Positions 105 through 14,899 of a stretch of 14,899 bases of DNA are shown here, one piece after another; position 1 is the stretch's first letter; each line of letters begins with the position of its first letter. A model generated the notes under the pieces. The model ran no database searches, had not been told where the DNA came from, and saw only the letters and a program-made list of their open reading frames with translations. A program made the translations under genes and the position numbers. Origin of the DNA: Penicillus capitatus (taxonomy: Eukaryota > Plantae > Chlorophyta); assembly GCA_965649825.1 (NCBI GenBank), contig CBFGMF010000001.1, forward strand, positions 1 to 14,899, read 5' to 3'.

Positions 105-1822
105 TTAAAGACGTTGGATTTCTTCATCTGAAGGGATGTCTCCTAGATTCTGTGGTACAGTTGGCTGTGAGGACATTTCGATCTCGATCGTGTCATCGAG
201 CGCTTTGCCCATCGTTTCGACAGGGATAAAGTAAACGGCTGTCCAGGCAACCAGGCACAAAAGGGAAAAGAGTATTTCCACGACCGTTGCGTGACCTTCG
301 TCCACCAGATGCACGGCAAAGAGTGGCGCCGCCAAGCCGCCAAAACGCGAAAACGCATTGCAGATGCCCATACCGAATGTCCGAACGTCCGTGGGGAACA
401 GCTCAGGGGTATAGACGAAGAGCGCATTGAAGGAGCCCGTGATGGATGTCCGTGCAGCAAAGAGAAGGGCTGTCTGGTAAATATCGCTTCCACTGAGCGC
501 GAGTGGCCACAAAGACATCGCACTCGCAAAGAGAAAGATCAGCATCGTCCGGCGGCGGCCGAAACTGTCGATCGTGAAAAAACAGATCGTAAATCCGACG
601 GTCTCCGCCGCCGTATCGATAAAGATCTCAAGATAGTCGCTCTCTTCTAACTCCAGCTCGCCATCCGCCGAGCACTCTTCAGCTTCCTTGGACTGGAGCT
701 CGGTCGTGAGCAGGACGATGCCGTAGTACATCATGGCATGGACGAACCAGGTGACGAAGAGCAGCAGGGTCCGTCGGATCAGGGCACTGGACACCAGTCT
801 GCACACCATTCCCCGTTGTCACGTATTCGCTCAAAAGAGTGAGAAGAGTGACGCACTCGGCGAGGCCACGGAACATGCCAGACGTCACTTTTTTGACGTG
901 ATAGTTAAAGTTCTTCGGTTCTGTGCTGACCGTCGGCGGCGTTCGGACCATCAGTTTGCCGGCGGGCAACTCCTTGCCGTTCAACTTGGCAATCCGTGCG
1001 AGAACACGCTCGGCGCGGAGCTGTTTGCCTTTCAACGCCAGAAATCTCGGCGATTCCGAGAGGAAAGGAAAGAAGAGGAGGAGAACGACGAAGGGGATGG
1101 TGGAAATGCCAAGCAGATATCTCCACCCCAACGATGGCAGAACAGCCCAAGCCAACGCCGCTTCGGCCAAGGCACCGATCGTCCAGAACGCCTGTACCAG
1201 AATGGCAAAGCGACCCCTCTGCTCCGTGGGGACAAATTCCAGAAACAGACTGAAAGCCACGTGCAGGCCGCCGATGCCTAACCCCACCAGTCCACGAAAA
1301 ATCAACAGACCCTACGTCACTCTTTTGTCACACGTTGATAGAGAGAGCCGAAATCCGACGGTGTAGTTCGGGGCAGCCGCCGAGGCAAAGCCCCAGATGG
1401 CAGTGAAAATGGCCGGGGCGAGGAATCCGATCTTGCGGCCTTCGCTGTCTCCGAGGACACCCCAAAGGTATGCACCGATGAACATCCCCACGAAGACGAC
1501 GCTCGTAATCGCTCCCTTCTCCATCGAACTGAGATTCCATTCGCAACTTGCCTGTGGACAGACGACATTGTTGGTGGCCTCTCTGGCGTTGTGTTGCTGG
1601 CGAGGCCGTCCGTCTTACCGAAGGAGCCAGAAATGACAGTAACATCATTTCCATGGCATCACACATCCAGGCAAAGCCAACGTAGAGAAGGAGAAGCCAT
1701 TGGTATCGACCGACGCCTGCGGCGCTGAGAGCTTCGTCAATGGTGTAGGTCCCAATGGAAGAGGAGACGGGGGCGGCATCCGATGCCTCGGTACGGATGA
1801 GACGGCCTTCTTCTTTTTCCAT
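105..1822 (-). CDS. MFS transporter, SLC22/SVOP-like (organic cation/carnitine transporter 7-like), 514 aa, 4 exons
   Basis: Exons 1822-1619, 1551-1360, 1311-857, 798-105; GT-AG introns 1618-1552 (67 nt), 1359-1312 (48), 856-799 (58). Exon sum is 1545 nt, in frame to TAA. SVOP/OCT7-type motifs: IDEAL..AGVGRYQ, FAWMCDAMEMMLLSFLAP, GDSEGRK, ESPRFL, DSFGRRRT, VYTPELFPTDVRTFGMG, PVETMGKAL. Confidence 0.93.
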
Positions 1823-1931: not shown

Positions 1932-3422
<1,491 letters not shown>

Positions 3423-3984: not shown

Positions 3985-4215
3985 TCACTTTGTGGAGTCT
4001 TTCCGTTTCTTCTCGGAGCTGTCTTTGGATGAGGCCTTGGCCACGGCACTGGCCTTCGATTTGGCTGTGGATTTTGTTCCGTCTGACGTTGCTTTGACCT
4101 TGCCGGTCGCCTTTGCCGTCGCCTTGCCAGACTTGGACGTCACCTTAACCTTCTTCGTCACCTTCTCCACGGTAGGGGCCGCAGCAATGCGCTCTGTCGG
4201 CAGCGACGCCAATTT
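3985..4215 (-). repeat. Low-complexity Lys/Ala/Thr/Ser-rich coding tail of GH17-A
   Basis: 76 aa after the last conserved Cys, with 19 Lys by hand count and short internal repeats (GKATAKATGKVKATS). Confidence 0.8.
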
Positions 4216-5577
4216 GCATTTCGTATCTGGCAAATCGAACGACGTCTTGCGTTCTCGCTTCTCATCGAAAACGCCGAGCTTGTATTCATGATCGCACAGA
4301 TCGCAGATGCCATTCTCGAAACTCGACAACTAGAATACGCAAGATAGAAATGCAAGCAAATCTAAAAAGGCGGCGGGCGTCCTTACGGCAAGATTCTTTT
4401 CCAGGCAGTTGGGGCAAGGATTCCAGACGGCACGCCAATCGCGATCGAAGGCAGAAGCGAGGTAGTAAGGACGCTCGTCTGCACCCTTGACGAATTCCTT
4501 GACATACTTCGTCGCCGCAGAGGATGACGCGATCGCCTGATAGCCATCCATATACACATCACTCTTCTCGACGGTTTTCTTTATGGACGCACCTGATATC
4601 CGTTTTTCTTTTCGGGAACATTGGGACAGCAGCGACGTCCGTTTGTCGGCCAGCCGGTCTCGCAGACCCAGACGTCTTTGGTGTAGAATTTTGACAGTCC
4701 AGTGGCACGCGCGTTGGCATAGGAGGCTGCAGCGATGCAGTTGTCCTTGGCGCGCAGCGGGCATTCTACAGGTCTCCCCTCTGTATACGGCATGATCTTG
4801 AGGCAGATAAAATCGACAGCCCTGGAGCAAACGAGGGGTATCAGCGCAAGTCTTTGCGTAGGAGGGTCGATCTACTCGGCGAGCGTGGCTCCGTGCTCCG
4901 ATTCCCAGACACCCCATCCTTCCGCCGTCGTCACCGGATGGGTCAGTTTGTGTTTGCGCAGAATCTTCTTGACGCGGTCGATGTAGCCGACCAACAGATC
5001 GACGTTGTCCTGGAAGAAGAGACAAGAGAGTTGGCGGCGGCGTGTGTGGCGGCTGGAATAGAGGACCAGGATTTTGGCATAGCGGTCGGTGCTGCCAATT
5101 CTGCCGTTGACGAAGGCATCGCTGCCGACGACGATAGCCTGGACGGCACCGGAATGCTTCTTCATGACCGATTCCATCATCTTCATCTCCTTCTCGTTGT
5201 CTTCTGCCGACGTTCCGAGAAAAACGCCGAGCAGAATGGTGACATTGAGCTTCTCTGCCTGTTCCATCATCGCCCACGTGGTCTCTGGACACACGGCAAT
5301 GTTGTAGAGCCGGATGCTCTTGACAAACGTCGCCATGATTTGGGTATCGATGATCGCCTAAAGTACAGAAGGTGTTCAGAGGCTTCGGTTGGCGGCTGTG
5401 GCGGCGGACTTGTTCTTTCGAGACGCAGATGTCTTCGGTGGAGAAAGCAAAGGGGTCGTAGGTGATTCCATACAGCGGTTTACAGCCGGTTGCTTTGGCA
5501 GGTGCAGCTCCCAGTGCACCGTACGTGCAGCAACTGATGACCAGAAGCAGCACAGCCAGACGGTCGAAGAATTGCAT
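3985..5577 (-). CDS. Secreted GH17-family protein, paralog A (438 aa); degenerate acid/base motif and Lys/Ala/Thr/Ser-rich C-terminal tail; 6 exons
   Basis: Exons 5577-5410, 5357-5067, 5009-4876, 4821-4593, 4536-4387, 4329-3985; GT-AG introns of 52, 57, 54, 56 and 57 nt. Sum is 1317 nt, in frame. Signal peptide MQFFDRLAVLLLVISCCTYGALG; motifs YGITYDPF, IRLYNIAVC, VVGSD (for VGNE), VDFIC, WVCETGWP, AFDRDW. Collinear with paralogs B-D. Confidence 0.88.
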
Positions 5578-6269
5578 ATTGTTTTGCGAGCGACGCCAGC
5601 AGCTCAAGCGCAAATGCGTTAAGGGACGAGCGGTCGACGTATCGCCACAGAAACTCGTTCTTGTGTGTTTGCCGGTTCTTTGGTGTAGGTGATATACAGG
5701 CGAAGAGCGAGTCTTCAAGAGATGTACGCGTTTGGCGGTGTCAAGAAAGGACGCCGAATTTCGATGCGTTGTTCAGCAGACTCGTCCGTCCACAAATGCA
5801 CGGTTGTACGGTACGCAGCGGTCAGCCATCGGTTCCTCTGCTCCAGCGGTTTTTGACTGGACGCCTGCGACGGTTGACCAAAACGCCTTGCCTATAGGAT
5901 ACCGTTCGACGCTGCCGATGGCGCCCTCTCGCATGACGCATCTTGGCCGCATCCACGGTGCAAAAGCGAGACGTGTGTGACGTTTCTGCGCGTTTCGACG
6001 ACCCGTCCACGACCGTCTTTGCTGAAAGAGTTCCTCGACGGCGATTTCGGCGTGAAGTTTCGTCCACTCAGCGACTAACCGTTTCATGGCGATTGCCGAC
6101 GGTATGAAAACACGAAGCGCGTGCAGGTGTTAACGATTCCTTGAAGACGATCGTGAACTGCGTCTGCCTTTCATTTCTTCCCACCCTCTGTCTTCGGTCA
6201 GACCCCAACCCAGAGGCGCGTATCTACCATCCACCACCGACTCCGAAAGCGACCGCTACCGTGCCTCGA

Positions 6270-7435
6270 ATGTCGGTCGTGAAATTCGTCCTCCTCACTG
6301 CGCTCATTGCGGTCATCTCTGCGACGCCGTCGTGTGAACCCAAGCCGTTCTATGGCGTCACCTACGCTCCCTTCTCTATGGACTATGCCAACATCTGTCT
6401 TCCGACCGAACGGGTAGGGACATCCGCGTGGCACTGATTGTCTCACCTGAGCGTGCGTGCGTTCGTGCGTGCTGCATAGGTCAAGAAAGATATGAAACTG
6501 ATTACGAAGGTTGCACACAGTATCCGCCTCTACAACATCGGCATCTGCTACGACGATACCATCGTCGTAATGGAAACGGCGAAGCGTCATGGCATGACGG
6601 TGACCATCGGACTCTGGATGGATGGCAACGATACGACGATCTTTGACAACGAGTTTGCCGTGCTCCCCGAAATGATGGAGAAATATGGAGACATCATCGA
6701 ATACGTCGTCGTCGGCAATGAACCCCTGAAGGTCGAAGAGATGAAAGTGGAAGACGTGATCGTGCGTTATCGACGTGTTAAGAAGTGGATGATCGCCAAC
6801 GGCTACTCCCATCCCGTGACGGTTGCCGAAGTCTGGCAGGCATGGGAATCGCCAGACGGATTCGAGCTCGTCAAAGAGGTCGATTTCCTATGTATGAACA
6901 TGCAGCCCTACTGGGAAGGGTTCTATGCCGAATGCCCCGACAACGAACCAGACTGCACGACGGCAGGTCGGCTAATCTCCTCTCTCCTGCAGAAATCGCA
7001 ACGCTGTCGTTCGTAGCGGACTATATCCATCTGAAGGCGGCGGGTTTGGAGGAGTTCTTTCAGAAGAAGATCGTGCTTTGTGAGTCTGGCTGGCCGACAC
7101 AAGGCGAAGCCTGTTGCAGTGGTATCGATGATCCCGTGATCCCTGGCTTCCATGCCGTTCCTTCCGTCGACAACGCAGTCCACTTCGTCCACAACTTCGT
7201 CTACCGTGCGAAGGAGCGAAATGTAAAGTACTACTTGCATGCGGGTATTGACGACGACTGGAAGAAGACCTGGGATCCCTGCGACGAATGCAAGGGCACG
7301 GGCGTTTCGAAGTTTGGTGGGGAGGAATGCGATTTCTGTGTTGTGGATTATTACTGGGGCATGTACACATACGATCGCACGTACAAACCGCACTACGTGT
7401 TGCCAGAAGCGGCGGCGCAATGCGATGTTCATTGA
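6270..7435 (+). CDS. Secreted GH17 beta-1,3-glucanase/glucanosyltransferase-like protein, paralog B (349 aa), 3 exons
   Basis: Exons 6270-6413, 6480-6966, 7017-7435; introns 6414-6479 (66 nt) and 6967-7016 (50 nt, with CTAAT branch-like motif). Sum is 1050 nt. Signal peptide MSVVKFVLLTALIAVISA; catalytic VVGNE (Glu codon 6720-6722) and LCESGWP (7082-7084). Confidence 0.93.
6451..6472 (+). repeat. Imperfect (GCGT)n microsatellite in GH17-B intron 1
   Basis: gcgtgcgtgcgttcgtgcgtgc. Confidence 0.5.
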
Positions 7436-7722
7436 GTGAGATGCGCATTTTTGTTTTCTCTCTCTTTTCTGCACATCTGAATTGATTTCGAACTTGATTC
7501 CGAATGCACGAGGTGATCTCGTTTGCTTTTCTGAACTATTTCATTCAAAGCCGTGTAGCATTTTGCTATCGCTAGCAGAAATGGCACAGGGCTTGAAACT
7601 GATCTAGCATAATCTGTCACGTCGAATATCTTATGCGAGATAACCTTCGCACAATAATGTACACGTCTAAATTCTTGTCTGAATTCAGCAGACACAATAA
7701 AGAGGTCTCTCTGTGACAGCTA

Positions 7723-7727
7723 TGTAA
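7723..7727 (+). terminator. Candidate TGTAA polyadenylation signal of GH17-B
   Basis: First TGTAA I found downstream of the 7435 stop, ~290 nt away in an AT-richer tract. Confidence 0.3.
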
Positions 7728-7744
7728 TGGATGCTTCCATAAAC

Positions 7745-8090
7745 TTATCGCACTGAGATTGAGAGGATTCGGCGGATGGGTTTGTCGAGAAGGGCAGGGT
7801 CGGCATCATGCGTGGCTGTTCCTTCAACGGAATCGTCAGAATCGTCCTTCGTCTTCTCGAAGGAAGAAAACGAACAGAGCGCGTCTTCACTTTGCCACCC
7901 GTGCATACGCGATTCCGTGCTCGTCGACGAAGAGGCCCGGCTTGAGAGAACCGTTTCGCCGGCTAGCAGCATCTGACCAGCCAAGAGCAGCAATGGCCTG
8001 GAAGGGCATTCGAAGGTCGCCGGGTTATATGCTCGACGGCTCTTCTGCCTTGTCGAGCATGCTCTGTTCGTATCGGCAACGAAAGAACAT
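7745..8090 (-). CDS. Speculative small spliced hypothetical protein (50-83 aa)
   Basis: ATG 8090 follows an acceptor-like tttacacag. A GC-AG intron at 8048-7998 gives MFFRCRYEQSMLDK-AIAALGWSDAASRRNGSLKPGLFVDEHGIAYAR; an optional intron at 7898-7856 adds KTKDDSDDSVEG...ISVR. No recognisable family, and the model needs non-canonical sites. Confidence 0.18.
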
Positions 8091-8659
8091 CTGTGTAAAG
8101 GGTATAGTGAGTGGCTTCGTAGACCGCGCCTATCGGTCCGTTCATCTCATGTACGCGTTTTGCGTGTAAGCAACGTGCGAACGGACCGTCCTTTTTGGTC
8201 CGCTTCTTCCCGCGGTTCGTGTGTTCGTTTTGGCCGAACGTGTTGTGAGGCAGTGGACAAGATGGACAAATGGCTTGTTTTGCCAGCGGGCGTCATATTT
8301 AACCACACGCGGCCTGTCTTATGACGGTCGTATCTATCATTCTCTAACAGGAGTTTGTCAAGAAGAACATGATGATCCAGCTGCGAACGCGTTTCTAACG
8401 GCTGTCACCGAACAATTGGCGGGTCGACGGGCAGCCAGCTGGACGACGAGGGCGAAGTTCGTACGTTCAAAGGCACCTAACCGTCAAGGCCTGAGCTCAA
8501 AGGCAGACCACCCGCCTTTGCAAAAAAGTACTTTACCTGAAGAAACTTACCGATTCGGCACAATCGTTAAAAGCTATACGAGTGGTCTCTGCTTTCCGAG
8601 CGTCGGATTCTTCTTTACGTTGTCGAAATCTCTTGGCATCTCTCGTAGCTAAACTCGAG

Positions 8660-8707
8660 GTAAGGGGTTCATCTTTGGCGCATCGATGGAGCCGTCGGTC
8701 TGTGTAG
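8660..8707 (+). other. Probable 5'UTR intron (48 nt) ending directly at the GH17-C start codon
   Basis: CTCGAG|gtaagg...tctgtgtag|ATGATG: strong donor, typical length, and no in-frame ATG seen in the nearby upstream exon. Confidence 0.6.
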
Positions 8708-9857
8708 ATGATGTCCATACCAACGATGGTCTTTTTCGCCCTCGCCGTGGCGGCGGTGTCCGCGACGGATTCCTGTACGCCGAAGCGCTTCTACGGCGTG
8801 ACCTATGCACCGTTAGCATTAGACTCCACCAATATCTGCCTCCCTGTCGAGCAGGTCAGGTCCGTCGACAACGACGTCCAGCGTCATATGTCCCCGTGCA
8901 GGTCAAGGAAGATATGGAAAAAATTGCTCAGCTCGCCAACAGCGTGCGTATTTACAATATTGCCGTGTGCTACGAAAACGCCATTCAAATCATGGAGAGC
9001 GCCAAGGCAAACGACATGACGGTTCTCATGGGTCTCTGGATGCAAGAAGGGGACCCATCGGTGTTCGAGAACGAATTTGAGCACTTGCCTGAATTTATGG
9101 AGAAGTACGGTGACATCATTGAGTATGTCATCGTCGGCAATGAGCCCGTCTTCATCGAAGAGATCGATGTCGATGAGGTCCTTGCGGCCTACAACAAAAC
9201 CAGAGCCTGGCTCAAGGAACATGACTACCCACACAAATCCTCCGTTGCCGAAGTGTGGCCCGTCTGGGAGACCGAAAGCGGACTGAAGCTCGCCAACGCG
9301 CTGGACTTTGTCTGCATGAACATGCAGCCATACTGGGAAGGCTTCTTCGCCAAGTGCCCAAGCAACGTCACGGACTGCACACCCGCAGGTTTGCCCATCG
9401 CACGCGTCTTGCTCTCTGAGTGCTGTGCGCCTTAGGCGAGTACATCCACTTGAAGGCGGAGGGTCTTCAGGGTTACTTTGGCAAACAAGTCGTTCTTTGC
9501 GAGGCAGGCTGGCCAACGCTCGGCGAGCCCTGCTGCAGTGGCAGTCGCGACAATGCCCTCACTGGCTTTCATGCCGTTCCTTCTCTCGAGAACGCCGCCG
9601 CCTTTGTGCAGAACTTCGTCGGCATCGCACAGCAACGCGAGGCCAAATACTATCTGCACACGATGTTCGACGAGCAATGGAAGCAAATCTGGGATCCCTG
9701 TGACGAGTGCAAAGGCCAACAGGTCTCCAAGTTCAGCGAAGACGAGTGCAACGGTTGCATTGTTGATTACAACTGGGGGTTCATGTCTTTCGAACGCGAG
9801 GTCAAGAGCGCATACGTCTTGCCAGAGCCTCTGCCTCAATGTCACTATAGCAACTGA
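8708..9857 (+). CDS. Secreted GH17 beta-1,3-glucanase/glucanosyltransferase-like protein, paralog C (351 aa), 3 exons
   Basis: Exons 8708-8854, 8902-9388, 9436-9857; introns 8855-8901 and 9389-9435 (47 nt each). Sum is 1056 nt. Signal peptide MMSIPTMVFFALAVAAVSA; IVGNE (9142-9144) and LCEAGWP (9501-9503). Same intron positions as B. Confidence 0.93.
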
Positions 9858-9890
9858 GAGAATAACCGCCGCAATTTTCGATACGAACTG

Positions 9891-9985
9891 TTTGATTGAT
9901 GATCCCGAATCCTATCTGACATAGCCTTAGTGACACTGTCTCCTTTACCGCTGGATTTGATTGGATCACGCATTTGATTGATCAC
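9891..9985. repeat. Three short near-identical motifs TTTGATTG(G)AT(CAC) in the GH17-C/PHT4 intergenic region
   Basis: tttgattgat 9891-9900, atttgattggatcac 9955-9969, atttgattgatcac 9972-9985. Confidence 0.5.
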
Positions 9986-10310
9986 CTGGTTAGCTATTGT
10001 TTTCGATGCCTCGATGCATCTCCTGCCTTGGATACGTGGCTACCAAATAAATCGTGAAGATGGCTCCTGTTCAAAATCTTCCTTTGTTGCCCGATAGACT
10101 AGACCAGTACGGAGAAGAATTTCGTGACGGCCTCGCTGTATGAAGGCGTCGTGAACAATAACGGATGGGATGTCGACACCCGTTTAAGAGAAATTCTTGT
10201 CAAGAATACTCCACGCTGTGCTCCTTTGATGCATCGCAGGGCATCATCGCTGTTCTTAAGGCCTCGGCCGTCGATCGCATTTCGACCATTCTTTTCCTTC
10301 ATTTCAGGAG

Positions 10311-12439
10311 ATGCGGTGTCGTCTCGTCCTTTCATCGACCTCCAAGAGCAGAGGCGCACGATGTTCCAAACAGACGGCCAAAAAAGACGAAAGAAACGGC
10401 GGCGATGTTGGGCGGGTGCATTCGAGGTAGGCAACGCCACACGTTTGCCCCTCTGTGCCAACCCTCGTTCGCTCAGGGACTTCCTGCGACATAGAGCACG
10501 ATTTGCCGACCGATCGCTAACGGCCACACGCGTGCGTTGCCTCTTAGTTGGATATCGGTGAGACAGGTTGCTGCAGATAGCGCAGATTACTCTCTGTACT
10601 TCCAACCGAACACCGAGCGATTCTCCCTCGAGCAGCAGTTCGGCATCTGAGGTCTCGTTCTCGAGCCTTGCTCATCGGCCTGATCCTCTGCGTCTTACTC
10701 AGAGTCTCTTAACCAATCTGAATCCTTCATCGACGAGCGAAGAGAGCTTTTCGCCGGCGCTGTGCAAAGAAGACGTGCAGATCGCGACAAGGGAAACGAC
10801 GGAGGTGTGCTGGCGCTGTATGTGGAGTATCGTGAGATGTACACGCGTAGGCCATCGATAGTGTGACGTCTGGGTCGCAGCTATGGCTGAATCGTCGATG
10901 GGTGATCGTGGGACTGTGCTTCGTCGCTTTCATGTTGTGTAACATGGATCGGGTGAACATGAGCATCGCGATTCTGCCGATGGCGACGGAGTTCGGATGG
11001 GACAGCCAGTTGAAAGGCATCGTGCAGTCCTCCTTCTTCTGGTGACCTTCTGGGCAGCTTCCCATCGACGATCACGCGGTTCGACAGGGGTTACCTTCTG
11101 ACGCAGATCCTGGGCGGCATCTGGGCCGATAAGTTCGGAGGGAAGCGCATTCTGGGTGCGGTTTGCAGATCGGAGAGGCGACAGACAGTGCGTATGTTTG
11201 TGCAGGCTTTGGTGTTGTCTGGTGGTCCATTGCGACAGCGGTGACGCCGTTTGCTGCACATCTCGGATTTCCAGCCCTCCTGACAGCGAGAGCCTGTATG
11301 GGAATCGGCGAGGGCGTTGCGATGCCGGCCATGAACAATCTTCTCTCCAAGTCTGTTGTCGCATCTCTCCTTCGCCGCCGCCTCTGCAAGAGGATACGAT
11401 GCACTGTCTCAGGTGGATACCGGTACAAGAGCGATCGAGGTCTTTGGCCTTCGTCTACAGCGGTATGTTTGTGGGGTCGATTCTGGGATTGGCCATTTCG
11501 CCGCATCTCATTCAGCTGCTACAGTGGCCTTCTGTATTTTTCATCTTTGGCTCATTCGGAATCGCTTGGCTGATTTTTTGGAATCAATCGGCGTCGAGCT
11601 CGCCGCAAGAAGACCCCCACATCAGCGACGCCGAACGCGATTACATCATCAGCGGAAAACAACAGAACGTCTGTCCGACGATGGCGTTTGGCCTGGATTG
11701 ACGCCTTGTGTGTTCAGGAACCGACAGTGGAGATTCCGTGGGGCAGAATCCTGTCGAGGATCGAAGTGTGGACGATCATCATCAGCCATTTCTGTCACAA
11801 CTGGGGTACCTTTATCCTGTTGACATGGATGCCGACCTACTACAACCAAGTCCTGGGATTGGACCTCATGAAATCGGGATTCTTCTCTGTCTTACCATGG
11901 ATCACGATGGCCATCGCGGCGAACATCGGCGGATGGCTCGCCGACAGCCTCGTCCCACGAATCGGCGTGACAAAAGTCCGCAAACTTATGCAAACCGTAA
12001 GCCCGCCGCCACGCGCCGCCATCCCTCGGATGACAGAGGCCTGTCTGTTGCAGATTGGATTTCTAGGTCCAGCACTGTTCTTGACGCAGCTCAGCAGAGT
12101 CCATTCTGTCCCGATGGCTGTCCTGTGCATGATGTGCTCACAAGGACTGGACGCTTTTAGCCAGTCTGGACTGTACTCCAATCACCAGGACATCGGTCCC
12201 AAGTACTCCGGCGTGCTTCTCGGTCCGTCATCCTTTGTCCTCTTCAGCACCTCGAGTCTTTGCTTTTAGGCCTGTCCAATACGGCAGGAGTGTTGGCTGG
12301 AGTGTTCGGAACATATGTGACGGGGCGCATTCTGCAGTACGGTTCGTGGGATCAAGTGTGGCACGTGTCCGTGACGCTCTACATCGTGGGCGCCGTGATT
12401 TGGAACCTATTTGCCACAGGAGAACGCATACTTGACTGA
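10311..12439 (+). CDS. PHT4: PHT4/ANTR-family (SLC17-like) plastid anion/phosphate transporter, PHT4;1/PHT4;4-like, ~558 aa, ~10 exons
   Basis: Exons 10311-10426, 10477-10531, 10577-10804, 10851-11041, 11088-11155, 11206-11350, 11413-11668, 11718-11996, 12054-12222, 12270-12439. Sum is 1677 nt, in frame. Motifs CNMDRVNMSIAILPM, QSSFFWGYLLTQ, GEGVAMPAMNNLLSKW, HFCHNWGTFILLTWMPTYY, SQSGLYSNHQDI, WNLFATGERILD. The Ser/Arg-rich N-terminus resembles a transit peptide. The first two exons and the start (alternatives 10165, 10361) are uncertain. Confidence 0.94.
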
Positions 12440-12851
12440 AAACCCGTCGATCGTCGTGCAGACCAGTTCCAAGGCTTTTTTCGCACATGAACTGGCACAC
12501 GCTTTTCTGTTTAACGTATGGAAACAGCTTTGTGCAATATCTTGGCACTAGGCAAAGTAAAAGCGTCCATTTGGCAATCGCCTTGAATTCTGACGACGGC
12601 CTCAATTAAGGGTCATCAACACCACAGGTGGCACATATATGGTCCTCCGCGTAAATGCCGGAAGCAGCTCGTGGCAATGCTGCGTCTGGAAGCTGTCTGT
12701 CAGCGAGACAGCGAACTCAAGGTTGAAGTTCAGCCCGCGCCTGCCGTGCAGCGACCTCCTATTTCTTGACTGGCTATCTAACCCACTTCGGTCAACTTTT
12801 CGCAGCGTTTAAGTTTACGGCACCGAGCGTGCACAACGGTGATTAGTAAAT

Positions 12852-13991
12852 ATGAGAGTTCTCGCCGCGGCTTTTCTTTTTCTTTGTGTGGCGCTGGGCG
12901 CACTGGCAGGGGAATACCGCGCCGGACAGTATCCATCGTCCACGACGCTGTTCGGCCTGACGTATTCCCCCTTTAACTTCAACGCATCGAGCTTCTGCTT
13001 ACCATCGGCGCAAGTCCTCACAGATATGGACATCATTCATCAAACATCCGACCACGTACGCACCTACAGTCTAGCTGCCTGTCGAGAAAACGTTGAGGTC
13101 CGACGCACGTACTCCTTACCTTCTATCCATATGCTCGCCCTCCTTGTGTAGACCATCCTCACATACTGCCAACAGAACAGCATGCGTGCGATATTGGGAC
13201 TCTTTCTCTCTGGGGACACAGCGGCCAACGATGCAGAGTTAGGAGGATTGGAAGGCATCTTGGCGACGCATGGCGACGTGATTGACGCGATCGCCGTCGG
13301 CAACGAAGTGCTCTTCGCGCGACAGGTATTACGATCTCCGCACCGTGCGTTTGTCTGACGGCGGGATGTGGCGCAGCTGACATTGCAGCAGCTGATTGGG
13401 TATGTCAAAGGAGCCAAAAGAATCGTGACGGCATCTCAGCACGACATACCGGTGTCAACGGCCGAAGTCTGGCCAGTGCTCGAATCTTCCGTCGGTCCTG
13501 ATCTGGTGGCCGAACTGGACTTCATTTGTATGAACATGCAACCCTTCTGGGAAGGATGGGATATTGTCTGTCCGCCGAGCTCAAGTGGATGTCTCTCAGC
13601 TGGGAAGTACGTGCACGCCAAGGCCGAGGGCCTCGAAGACTATCTGAAAAAACCCGTGTGGATTTGTGAGTCGGGATGGCCGACAGAAGGCGAAAGATGT
13701 TGCCAGGGACGTGACAATGCGAGAGATGGACTCTTGGCTGGACCAAGCGAAGCGAATCTAACCATTTTCCTTGAGGAACTGGTGAACGGTGGGAAACAGG
13801 TGAATCGCCCAACGTATATCCACGCCATTTTTGACGAAGACTGGAAACGCATCTGGTCACCCTGCGGTACCTGTGAGGGACTGAGTACAGGAGTGAACGA
13901 TCCCTCCTGCAATTCGTGTGAACTGGATTATCATTTCGGTATCTATGAGTCTGATCGCACTCCGAAGAAGGGAGTCACTCTTCCTGCTTGA
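12852..13991 (+). CDS. Secreted GH17 beta-1,3-glucanase/glucanosyltransferase-like protein, paralog D (344 aa), 3 exons
   Basis: Exons 12852-13097, 13152-13325, 13377-13991; introns 13098-13151 (54 nt) and 13326-13376 (51 nt). Sum is 1035 nt. Signal peptide MRVLAAAFLFLCVALGALA; FGLTYSPF, VRTYS, AVGNE (13305-13307), WICESGWP (13668-13670), IFDEDWK, HFGIY. Confidence 0.92.
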
Positions 13992-14089
13992 CGCACGCAA
14001 ACAAACGACGCTTCTTTATGAACGTCAAAGAACGCTGCTCCTTTTTGGAAGGACCTCCAAAACTAGATGATGATTTTTATTTTTTGTTT

Positions 14090-14186
14090 TGTAACCGTGG
14101 AGAGAAGATGTCTCTTGTGACAAACGATCGTGTCCATGTCGACACGGCGATGAACCTTCATGTAACCTCAAGCAAACGAAATGTAA
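14090..14186 (+). terminator. Three candidate TGTAA polyadenylation signals after GH17-D
   Basis: TGTAA at 14090-14094, 14161-14165 and 14182-14186, preceded by a T-rich tract at ~14074-14090. Confidence 0.45.
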
Positions 14187-14899
14187 CAAAGACACTCTTA
14201 GCCAACAACAGATCTTGAAAACGCGAATCGTATCTCGCCATCTCCTTCTATGGCAAAGGAAAAAGCGTTCTTTACCTCGTTAGCATGAAGTGACCGATGC
14301 CAGCTAGAGCATCGCGCGTTGTGTTTGGAGTGATTGTCTAACTGTTAGCTGATCCGAATGCGAAAAGGTACTGACTGGAGACAACTTCTCTGTCTGATGC
14401 TGCTTCGGAGTCCGTTTCGAGATATTCGCTTGTGCGTGGTGTGACAGGCAGTGTCTTGACAGACAACACAAGGAAGTGACGTTTTGCCATCGGAGCTGTA
14501 CGTAACGATGACTTACTCTGCCTTTTCAAAGACACAAGCCTACATACACGATGTCCATAACAGTCACTGTCTTTCATTACTCTCGAGCGATTCAGCTGCT
14601 CAAGAGCACAAGCACAACAACCCATCCTTAATCAGAACACAGCACGCCTGTTTGTTAAACACGCAGAAAAGACAGAATCGGAAAAGACAGAACACTCCTC
14701 AAGGCTTCCAGGATTCAGGTCGAATACAACCAAGCATGTCTACGCGATTTGGAAGAGATTGTTTCGAGGTGTCGTGTTCACACATCGACAATTCTCGGAG
14801 TTCTACAGCTAGAAATAAAACGGAACTGCAGTTGCCATACAACAAAGGACGCTTCGCTTGAATCGGTCATCGGAATTGAGACTCAGAAAAGGCGTCAGC

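Follow-up and report, generated by a model that had tools for sequence, protein, structure and literature searches.

Gene content and structure of the locus

Four intact paralogous GH17 genes, referred to as A, B, C, and D, lie in the window, that is, the whole stretch of DNA analysed, which is 14,899 nucleotides long. Their positions and arrangement are those given by the first-pass annotation, and its description of one inverted and divergent paralog, two in tandem, and one beyond a transporter gene is borne out by the gene models. Gene A, the A-type paralog (3985-5577, minus strand), encodes 438 aa in six exons (5577-5410, 5357-5067, 5009-4876, 4821-4593, 4536-4387, and 4329-3985). The other three genes are on the plus strand and have three exons each: gene B (6270-7435; exons 6270-6413, 6480-6966, and 7017-7435) encodes 349 aa, gene C (8708-9857; exons 8708-8854, 8902-9388, and 9436-9857) encodes 351 aa, and gene D (12852-13991; exons 12852-13097, 13152-13325, and 13377-13991) encodes 344 aa. 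All 11 introns are GT..AG introns of 47-66 nt. The fifth intron recognized in gene A (5066-5010, 57 nt, in frame) is missed by a naive ORF reading and was placed there because the corresponding 19-aa stretch is absent from all five orthologues; a donor at 5111 was considered for it and rejected, as alignment with the orthologues puts the donor at 5066.

A and B are transcribed divergently from the two sides of a 692-bp intergenic spacer (5578-6269), a candidate shared promoter region, and B and C stand in tandem. D is separated from C by an MFS_1 transporter gene on the plus strand with approximate ends at 10800 and 12300, named PHT4 in the first-pass annotation, with Pfam MFS_1 matches on the ORFs 11163-11573 and 11688-12269. 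The host is a bryopsidalean (siphonous) green alga whose best named relatives are Caulerpa and Ostreobium, and by protein identity, it is nearer to Caulerpa than to Ostreobium.

Secretion features and cysteine scaffold

Each of the four proteins has one N-terminal hydrophobic window of 19 residues (Kyte-Doolittle 1.96-2.28), followed by small residues (ISA, VSA, ALA, or ALG) that fit the -3/-1 pattern of signal peptides. Past residue 30, the hydropathy maximum is 1.14, and neither a second hydrophobic segment nor a hydrophobic C-terminus was seen in A-D. The profile agrees in all four cases with the earlier description of a signal-peptide-like start and no obvious GPI or TM anchor, and from hydropathy, we infer that A-D are secreted proteins without a membrane or GPI anchor.

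The proteins contain 14-16 cysteines each. The shared cysteine scaffold proposed earlier is recovered in the alignment of 21 family members as 10 invariant and two nearly invariant columns. Before the last barrel strand lies a CxxC-(12)-CxxC insert (7280-7339 in B, plus strand), with equivalents at 9699-9758 in C, 13863-13919 in D, and 4416-4294 in A, and all four of its cysteines are invariant in the family. The insert was not found in the next tier of relatives, where profile matches stop near position 297-304, and its region is modelled with low confidence in B (residues 301-317, pLDDT <50).

Gene A additionally encodes a C-terminal tail of 76 aa rich in Lys, Ala, Ser, and Thr (3988-4215, minus strand), with 21 basic and six acidic residues, which is predicted to be disordered (pLDDT <50 at residues 374-438). 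The A-type orthologues also have long, charged, low-complexity tails, the sequence of which is not conserved, and they have in common 12 conserved cysteines and a conserved 12-aa insertion.

GH17 membership

The assignment of the four genes to GH17, made earlier from motifs, holds at the level of both sequence and predicted fold. Gene D matches RmBgt17A, the GH17 beta-1,3-glucanosyltransferase of Rhizomucor miehei (PDB 4WTP), with a phmmer E-value of 4.4e-22 and 81.7 bits over 218 residues (D residues 29-246), an alignment that pairs both catalytic motifs; its match to 8AKP has an E-value of 4.5e-4. A search with the family profile recovered 2502 proteins at E<=1e-10, some of which are labelled GH17 by their sources. 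The AF2 model of gene B (pLDDT 86.4, pTM 0.85) has GH17 proteins as its top four PDB matches in Foldseek (4WTR/4WTP, 6FCG, and 8AKP), with a TM-score of 0.86-0.88 against 4WTR/4WTP when normalised to the target. The model of gene A has a confident core, and its top three Foldseek matches are all GH17. The predicted structure of both proteins is a (beta/alpha)8 barrel, the nearest structural relatives of which are GH17.

The HMMER check against Pfam PF00332 gave sub-threshold scores for B (20.6 bits), C (24.5 bits), and D (28.0 bits), all under the gathering cut-off of 28.2 bits, and no match for A. The sub-threshold matches span only profile positions 223-301, the C-terminal third, and precomputed Pfam annotation assigns PF00332 to many homologues. 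These scores are read as the behaviour of a plant-biased GH17 model and not as counter-evidence to membership. The Pfam test, run on single-exon ORFs and full models, was dropped as a criterion of membership after the clear sequence and fold matches in the PDB. A-D are genuine members of GH17 and belong to its fungal/bacterial transglycosylase ("Bgt/Bgl2") type.

Catalytic and aglycone-site residues

In RmBgt17A, the proton donor is Glu99 and the nucleophile is Glu189, and Tyr102, Trp157, and Glu158 are all indispensable to transglycosylation (PMC11005184). B, C, and D keep both the G-N-E motif of the proton donor after strand 4 (6714-6722 in B, within 9130-9153 in C, and within 13293-13316 in D) and the C-E-[SA]-G-W-P-T motif of the nucleophile on strand 7 (CESGWPT at 7079-7099 in B, CEAGWPT at 9498-9518 in C, and CESGWPT at 13665-13685 in D). 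Gene A, on the minus strand, has VVGSDAF at 5112-5132, with Ser-Asp at the acid/base Asn-Glu site of the other three, and keeps the nucleophile Glu in CETGWPT (4644-4664). The contrast of GNE and CE[SA]GWPT with GSD and CETGWPT upholds the original observation that both catalytic Glu are kept in B, C, and D and not in A.

The nucleophile Glu of C-E-[STA]-[GS]-W-P-T is invariant in the 21 aligned family members, A included, and aligns with the Glu-to-Ala site of the RmBgt17A active-site mutant 4WTR. The loss of the donor Glu with retention of the nucleophile is found in eight of eight A-type sequences, namely those of the window, the two other genomes carrying the locus (L002 and L004), two from Caulerpa, and three transcripts. 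At the acid/base motif, the A-types other than gene A have GNN, GNQ, GSD (L002), or GTD (L004), with Glu in none, and those of Caulerpa have Asn-Gln.

On the aglycone side, the Trp-Glu pair (Y/F-W-E-G; YWEG within 6903-6920 in B) is kept in B, C, and D, while A has Thr-Glu. The Tyr102 position, three residues after the proton donor, is Phe in C and D and Lys in B, so that D has N-E, C-E-S, Phe, Trp, and Glu at the sites of the RmBgt17A donor, nucleophile, Tyr102, Trp157, and Glu158. The pair is not proof of transferase activity because it also occurs in at least one GH17 hydrolase, FbGH17B (PMC11005184). The Trp-Glu pair together with an aromatic residue at the Tyr102 site would be necessary, not sufficient, for transfer.

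Relations among the paralogs and conservation in siphonous green algae

B and C are 55% identical overall, and the earlier hand count of approximately 54% without gaps over the 162-aa middle exon is confirmed on recount (87/162, 53.7%). D is 37-38% identical to B and C, and A is 33-35% identical to the other three. The neighbour-joining (NJ) tree resolves three subfamilies, A, B/C, and D, at 91-100% bootstrap with members from Caulerpa and/or Ostreobium, in keeping with the notion of old duplicates; as judged from sequence, the subfamilies are older than the split from Caulerpa. The phylogeny proposed as a check thus supports the subfamilies but not the deep branching order. The sister group of the algal clade and a possible bacterial origin are left without support in this tree, with a basal bootstrap of 1-15%, and horizontal transfer is therefore not claimed.

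The gene order GDH, A (minus), B (plus), MFS transporter, and D recurs in both L002 and L004. L002 is collinear with the entire window at 81-88% nucleotide identity, and its A orthologue is intact, with the exon structure seen in the window; in L004, the order is GDH, A (minus), B/C (plus), MFS, D, and D. All four orthologue pairs between the window and L002 are under purifying selection, with dN/dS of 0.157 for A, 0.081 for B, 0.106 for C, and 0.189 for D. Within A, the core has a value of 0.12 and the C-terminal tail a higher one, about 0.38. In Caulerpa, the gene pairs g5358/g5359 and g8795/g8796 each place an A-type beside a B/C-type gene. A and B are adjacent in three genomes, and in Caulerpa the two have been duplicated as a unit. 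The A-B spacer of the window is close in length to those of L002 (708 bp) and L004 (689 bp). It is 72-75% identical between the window and L002; between the window and L004, no conserved promoter block above chance was found, and only the spacer length is conserved.

The best homologues of gene C are transcripts at 72% identity and Caulerpa lentillifera proteins at 65-68%, and the orthologues of gene D include Caulerpa g5379 (64%) and Ostreobium CAD7699139 (52%). In relatives, transcript evidence comes from full-length, intron-free contigs of two orthologues, one A-type (L006) and one C-type (L007). No other GH17 gene was found within 10 kb of the Ostreobium D-type gene, and the cluster is therefore not universal in Bryopsidales. 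Cysteine-rich relatives also occur in Bryopsis and in the chlorophycean Haematococcus, which is not among the taxa with beta-1,3-xylan walls named in PMC6419167; with such members, the wider cysteine-rich subfamily is not tied to xylan walls.

Proposed function

The reading that we favour, with somewhat better than even confidence, is that of a secreted, disulfide-rich GH17 set in which B, C, and D are active wall transglycosylases and A is an altered partner. From their residues, B, C, and D are predicted to be catalytically active with a retaining mechanism. In this mechanism, the Glu of G-N-E at the end of strand 4 would donate the proton, and the Glu of C-E-x-G-W-P-T on strand 7 would form the covalent glycosyl-enzyme intermediate. 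The enzymes would thereby cleave a wall chain with beta-1,3 linkages and attach its donor part to another chain, with some hydrolysis. Transglycosylation is the best guess because the Trp-Glu pair is present in all three enzymes and the aromatic residue in C and D; the Lys that B has at the Tyr102 site, in place of an aromatic residue, counts against this reading. The wall microfibrils of bryopsidalean algae consist of beta-1,3-xylan or mannan (PMC6419167), and Caulerpa xylan contains in-chain glucose up to about 10% (PMC13351767). A callose-like glucan or the glucose-containing beta-1,3-xylan of siphonous algae would be the likely substrate.

Gene A, having lost the donor Glu and the aglycone Trp and kept the nucleophile and the fold, would act as a conserved partner, most likely as a beta-1,3-glycan-binding protein or a very slow, altered enzyme. 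Weak or altered activity is conceivable because its acid/base site has Asp and not an amide. The A-type gene is transcribed divergently from its B-type neighbour across a spacer of constant length. A retained, non-standard partner fits better than a decaying pseudogene because no A-type orthologue has the donor Glu and the core is under purifying selection. The earlier proposal of active enzymes plus a non-catalytic or altered partner stands as three catalytically complete proteins and one altered one, but "non-catalytic" is too strong for the A protein of this alga. To call the cluster a system was also an overreach, as the evidence is one of conserved linkage, chiefly of the divergent A/B pair, and the clustering could reflect the mere history of tandem duplication. 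On sequence evidence, the A-D set is nevertheless a plausible wall-remodelling toolkit.

A more specific version of wall remodelling, which we regard as rather unlikely, takes the B/C- and D-types to be the missing remodellers of beta-1,3-xylan (glucoxylan) microfibrils and the A-type to be a partner that binds and presents chains or an enzyme acting on activated donors, co-expressed with the B-type through the shared divergent promoter.

Among the alternatives, secreted defence or digestive endo-beta-1,3-glucanases of the PR-2 kind, directed at fungi, oomycetes, or laminarin-bearing epiphytes and not at the alga's own wall, are unlikely without being negligible. Defence genes typically lie in multi-copy clusters that diversify fast, B, C, and D have an intact pair of catalytic Glu and the features of secreted proteins, the UniRef name of the Ostreobium orthologue is endo-1,3-beta-glucosidase, and, of the four best fold matches, two (the laminarinase 6FCG, and 8AKP) are hydrolases. 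Defence families are, on the other hand, expected to show species-by-species gene turnover, whereas the A, B/C, and D clades each hold orthologues of several species, and selection on the orthologues is fairly strong and purifying (dN/dS 0.08-0.19). Among solved structures, a transglycosylase is the closest, and the aglycone residues conserved here are also those of that enzyme; a defence role leaves the conserved, donor-less A without a function. A wound response, in which beta-1,3-glucan and not the structural wall would be trimmed or cross-linked after a giant cell is cut, is quite unlikely. Siphonous algae need very fast wound sealing (PMC11441479), and that GH17 enzymes work on beta-1,3-glucan is established (PMC7570368); in the literature examined, however, no evidence was found for callose in bryopsidalean wound plugs, and the callose passages of PMC10762512 concern streptophytes. 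The sequences themselves do not tell callose turnover from general wall remodelling.

That A is a functionless, decaying pseudo-enzyme and the cluster a remnant of old tandem duplications appears very unlikely. The absence of the proton-donor Glu and of the aglycone Trp and the blindness of Pfam to A would agree with decay, but its frame is open across six exons in both the window and L002 with the constrained core noted above, and A-type orthologues in at least five other sources retain the invariant nucleophile, the 12 cysteines, and the 12-aa insertion. One of them is represented by a spliced, transcript-like contig, and the adjacency of A and B in three genomes, duplicated as a unit in Caulerpa, is also against decay. 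An origin from a contaminating fungus, oomycete, or bacterium or from mis-assembly is effectively refuted. In its favour, the structure nearest to the set among those solved comes from a fungus, bacterial proteins form the next tier of sequence matches, and a contig of 3x coverage with the same locus (L001) continues into bacterial ABC-transporter genes, but the junction in that contig lies outside the cluster, past window position 14574. A-D have short GT-AG introns (47-66 nt) and stand between GDH and MFS genes on a 703-kb contig, a sister species has the locus on a 704-kb contig at 156x, and orthologues are present in the genome annotations of Caulerpa, Ostreobium, and Bryopsis.

Significance

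Bryopsidalean seaweeds such as Caulerpa, Halimeda, and Bryopsis are single cells of centimetre to metre scale whose microfibrils are not cellulose. A 2019 review of algal xylans was framed around the scant knowledge of xylan synthesis (PMC6419167), and no paper on the remodelling of bryopsidalean walls was found in the literature searched. The description of the genes as undescribed agrees with the literature search, which yielded no publication on GH17 from Caulerpa, Ostreobium, Bryopsis, or Codium and no description of this cysteine-rich subfamily in these genera or in green algae at large. The locus offers clonable candidates, namely three catalytically complete GH17 proteins with transglycosylase-like active sites and a conserved donor-less partner, and linkage of the genes extends to at least three genomes. 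Activity on beta-1,3-xylan or glucoxylan would extend GH17 specificity to a new polymer and might provide tools for algal biomass processing; to our knowledge, GH17 activity on a xylose-based triple-helical polymer is undescribed. Should the proteins prove to be ordinary beta-1,3-glucanases, the gain is a neat annotation of a cysteine-rich GH17 subfamily specific to this lineage.

Comparison with known systems

The GH17 proteins of land plants (PR-2 and plasmodesmal callose hydrolases) share with the algal set the CAZy family and the catalytic Glu pair, and they are secreted, as is predicted for the algal proteins. The Pfam model, weighted towards plants, all but misses the algal set, no plant GH17 structure is among the top 50 fold matches of the gene B model, and no CBM43/X8 module or GPI signal was seen in the algal proteins, the module being judged by length and alignment. 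The next sequence tier after the green-algal clade consists of proteobacterial GH17 proteins (26-30% identity, E 1e-9 to 1e-14), including GH17 plus membrane-domain proteins of roughly 560 aa and GH17-GT2 fusions (Glt1/Glt3/Glt7/NdvB-like and Glt20), of which P0071 is an example. Characterised members of this tier are transglycosylases (PMC11005184). The bacterial proteins differ in their fusion to membrane or GT2 domains and have neither the algal cysteine scaffold nor the CxxC insert.

In yeast, Bgl2, Scw4, Scw10, and Scw11 are GH17 paralogs that are secreted without covalent anchoring and remodel wall beta-1,3-glucan (PMC7663962). The algal set is likened to them by description, as multiple GH17 paralogs predicted to be secreted and unanchored, and differs in the host wall, which is glucan in yeast and xylan or mannan in bryopsidalean algae. 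The yeast proteins have a signal peptide and a single catalytic domain without an anchor, as is predicted for the algal set; their genes are not known to be clustered, and we know of no conserved donor-less member among them. For the A-type, myrosinase (GH1, clan GH-A) may serve as an analogy, as this retaining enzyme, with a natural Gln at the acid/base position instead of Glu, is functional with the nucleophile alone. The likeness to the Asn-Gln of the Caulerpa A-types can be taken as a lead only, and myrosinase belongs to another family and acts on another substrate with an activated leaving group.

RmBgt17A (4WTP/4WTR/4WTS) is the best sequence and fold match among solved structures. It resembles the algal proteins at the donor and nucleophile Glu sites, in the Trp-Glu pair of B, C, and D, and in the aromatic residue at the Tyr102 site of C and D. 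Identity over structurally aligned residues is, however, only 21-22%. In length, the algal proteins exceed RmBgt17A by about 60 residues, and they have G-N-E in place of G-S-E at the acid/base motif. Unlike RmBgt17A, they have 12 conserved cysteines, among them a Cys-Cys pair after the nucleophile and those of the CxxC...CxxC insert before the last strand, and they are encoded by a conserved multi-paralog cluster that includes a donor-less partner.

Gene models and organization of the cluster

The models of genes A–D were hand-built from open reading frames (ORFs) and splice sites and then compared with homologues, and they bear out the first-pass annotation, which had claimed four paralogous genes in 3985–13991. 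Gene A, which runs on the minus strand from 5577 to 3985, has six exons encoding 438 aa; the other three lie on the plus strand with three exons each, namely, B (6270–7435; 349 aa), C (8708–9857; 351 aa), and D (12852–13991; 344 aa). All 11 introns are of the GT..AG type and 47–66 nt long. Compared with a plain ORF reading, the model of A requires an in-frame 57-nt intron at 5066–5010, as none of the five A-type orthologues has the 19 residues that this stretch would contribute. The layout is also as first described: A and B diverge across a 692-bp spacer, B and C stand in tandem, and D lies beyond a transporter gene (MFS_1 in Pfam). In the middle exon, B and C share 87 of 162 aa (53.7%) without gaps, in agreement with the earlier hand estimate, and the paralog identities are 55% for B–C, 37%–38% for B/C against D, and 33%–35% for A against the others.

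Upstream of the cluster are a Sugar_tr/MFS transporter gene (window 105–1822, minus strand) and a glutamate dehydrogenase (GDH) gene (ELFV_dehydrog; window ~2150–3422, plus strand), both collinear in L002, a contig of a sister species. GDH adjoins the A-type gene in L004, a contig of a more distant genome, too, so the conserved block exceeds the four GH17 genes. Within the B–C spacer (7436–8707; 1.27 kb), approximately 440 bp (7743–8182) does not align to L002, and the spacer ORFs 7759–8169 and 8221–8652 have no Pfam match; the unaligned stretch is probably non-coding with an indel. On the 3' side of D, the GC content drops to ~0.49 (window 13501–14899), alignment to L002 continues to 14830, and the ORFs found there (e.g., 14484–14861) have no Pfam match.

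Membership of the GH17 family

In HMMER searches against PF00332, B, C, and D scored 20.6–28.0 bits, below the 28.2-bit cut-off, with a match covering the last third of the domain only, and A was unmatched; the family assignment made in the first reading thus falls short on this profile and stands on other evidence. D matches RmBgt17A, a GH17 beta-1,3-glucanosyltransferase of Rhizomucor miehei with solved structures (PDB 4WTP/4WTR), at E = 4.4e-22; the alignment spans 218 residues and brings both catalytic motifs into register. The AlphaFold model of B (pLDDT 86.4, pTM 0.85) has GH17 proteins as its best four PDB matches (RmBgt17A, a Formosa laminarinase, and Penicillium G7048), with a TM-score of 0.86–0.88 to the RmBgt17A structures, normalized to the target. 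In the model of A, the core is confident and the tail disordered, and its best three fold matches are GH17 as well; plant GH17 structures were not found among the top fold matches. The PF00332 scores alone would be weak, and it is the RmBgt17A sequence match together with the fold matches that settles the identity: by alignment and predicted structure, A–D are GH17 proteins of the fungal/bacterial side of the family.

Secretion features and cysteine scaffold

At its extreme N-terminus, each of the four proteins shows a single strongly hydrophobic stretch of 19 residues, followed by small residues. Elsewhere, Kyte–Doolittle values do not exceed 1.14 and the C-termini are not hydrophobic, which matches the earlier statement that no obvious anchor is present; A–D are accordingly predicted from hydropathy to be secreted. 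A net charge of −19 to −28 makes the mature forms of B, C, and D acidic. The shared Cys scaffold that had been proposed is recovered as 10 invariant and two nearly invariant columns across 21 aligned sequences, including a Cys-Cys pair 10 residues past the nucleophile and a CxxC-(11–15)-CxxC insert ahead of the last strand. This insert is modeled with low confidence and is missing in the next tier of relatives, where profile matches stop near position 300.

Active sites and the donor-less A-type

The proton donor of RmBgt17A is Glu99 and its nucleophile Glu189, and its transglycosylation requires Tyr102, Trp157, and Glu158 (PMC11005184). These positions were transferred to A–D through the D–RmBgt17A alignment and the family alignment. 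Both catalytic Glu are kept in B, C, and D but not in A, just as the motifs had first been read; it is the donor Glu that A lacks. B, C, and D share the donor motif G-N-E and an aglycone Trp-Glu; the nucleophile motif is C-E-S-G-W-P-T in B and D and C-E-A-G-W-P-T in C, and the Tyr102 position holds Lys in B and Phe in C and D. A has G-S-D at the donor (Ser133-Asp134), C-E-T-G-W-P-T at the nucleophile, and an aglycone Thr-Glu. Phe occupies the Tyr102 position, three residues after the donor Glu, in all other catalytically complete family members, while Lys is found in B (window 6714–6731) and its L002 orthologue, which hints at a distinct acceptor site and suggests another acceptor preference or more hydrolysis.

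The three A-type transcripts have GNN at the donor, both Caulerpa A-types have GNQ, and the motif is GSD in the L002 orthologue and GTD in that of L004, with the nucleophile Glu present in all eight A-type sequences; on these motifs, donor loss in A is not peculiar to the source species. The A-types also have in common a 12-residue insertion directly after the donor strand (consensus K-I-G-S-x-x-R-Y) and a long, charged, low-complexity C-terminal tail, which in the window is 76 residues long with 21 basic and six acidic residues, giving a basic tail on a core neutral in charge.

Relatives, linkage, and selection

Among named relatives, C is closest to proteins of Caulerpa lentillifera (65%–68%) and Ostreobium quekettii (47%), and D shares 64% of its residues with Caulerpa g5379 and 52% with that Ostreobium protein; more distant relatives include a protein each of Bryopsis sp. 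KO-2023 and Haematococcus. These identities place the window in a siphonous green alga of the order Bryopsidales, nearer to Caulerpa than to Ostreobium. GMH43218 is a bryopsidalean GH17, and an RNAi method has been published for Bryopsis (PMC12961179). The duplications had been called old, and a neighbour-joining tree with 100 bootstraps concurs: the A (100%, both Caulerpa A-types inside), B/C (99%), and D (91%, Ostreobium inside) clades each hold members from other species. The subfamilies are therefore older than the split from Caulerpa, and D is older than the split from Ostreobium. B is sister to C plus Caulerpa and transcript sequences (95%), and by this topology the B–C duplication is old as well. 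A fourth, catalytically complete clade of transcript-derived members (P0005, P0007, and P0008; 100%) is sister to the B/C type, has C-terminal tails rich in Ser/Thr/Pro, and has no member in the window.

L002, a 704-kb contig, is collinear over the whole window at 81%–88% nucleotide identity, and all four orthologues are intact with identical exon structure. Against them, dN/dS is 0.157 for A (core 0.12, tail ~0.38), 0.081 for B, 0.106 for C, and 0.189 for D. Intron 2 of the C orthologue (L002 12896–12943) opens with GC, not GT (GCAAGC...TTAG), which, provided that the model is correct, makes it a GC-AG intron. Full-length intron-free contigs of A-type and C-type orthologues in public read sets (L006 and L007) resemble transcripts, and these orthologues thus appear to be expressed in relatives.

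In L004, where the GC content is 43%, the genes run GDH, A(−), B/C(+), MFS, D, D, with tandem D-type copies at 7773–8994 and 9476–10639 and a single B/C-type copy, as against one D and two B/C in the window; the member affected by tandem duplication therefore differs by lineage. The A–B spacer measures 692, 708, and 689 bp in the window, L002, and L004, respectively, with its sequence unconserved at depth. In Caulerpa, an A-type and a B/C-type twice carry consecutive gene numbers (g5358/g5359 and g8795/g8796), the two having been duplicated together; within 10 kb of the Ostreobium D-type gene there is no other GH17 gene. A public contig, L001 (37 kb, 3x coverage), is 99.4% identical to window 4022–14574, beyond which (L001 10553–15414) bacterial-looking genes abruptly follow (ABC peptide transporter, LacI, and GFO/IDH/MocA). 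As the window and L002 stay collinear past this junction, L001 looks like an alga–bacterium assembly chimera.

Predicted function and alternative explanations

B, C, and D possess everything that a retaining GH17 enzyme requires, and C and D the full aglycone set of RmBgt17A, which favours secreted wall enzymes. They would cut a chain with beta-1,3 linkages, retain its donor part on the Glu of strand 7, and transfer that part to a second chain, with some hydrolysis. In A, normal leaving-group protonation would be impossible, although weak protonation through Asp may occur in the source species. Although A lacks the +1 platform Trp as well, it is conserved and adjoins a B-type gene; the simplest reading would be a member that binds glycans, or one that is altered and very slow, working alongside the active enzymes. 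The charged tail of A may retain it in the polyanionic wall. This composite, predicted wall transglycosylases with an altered partner, is somewhat better than an even bet. Defence-type or digestive glucanases are a distinctly less probable account, and wound-callose enzymes slightly less probable again. That A is a dead relic seems very improbable, and a contaminant origin of the genes is the least credible of all, given their short spliceosomal introns, their place on a ~703-kb contig, and the collinear 704-kb contig of the sister species.

Bryopsidalean microfibrils consist of beta-1,3-xylan or beta-1,4-mannan, cellulose being absent in most genera, and beta-1,3-xylan forms triple helices (PMC6419167); in-chain glucose in Caulerpa beta-1,3-xylan ranges from none to ~10%, and glucoxylan hexasaccharides have been synthesized (PMC13351767). 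B, C, and D all keep the Trp that contacts glucose O6 in RmBgt17A, which would, if anything, favour a glucose-containing substrate. Cys-rich relatives occur in Haematococcus too. A GH17 acting on beta-1,3-xylan would be new, if true.

Comparison with known GH17 proteins

The cluster had been put forward as undescribed, and a literature search found no paper naming GH17 alongside Caulerpa, Ostreobium, Bryopsis, or Codium; the only annotation in existence, assigned automatically to the Ostreobium protein, is 'glucan endo-1,3-beta-D-glucosidase'. A–D are of the same kind as the Bgt/Bgl2-like GH17 proteins but are set apart from described members by the 12-Cys scaffold and the CxxC...CxxC insert. 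Unlike those members, the A, B/C, and D subfamilies are, as far as databases show, confined to siphonous green algae, and the algal set is further distinguished by a conserved donor-less partner that is divergently paired with a B-type gene.
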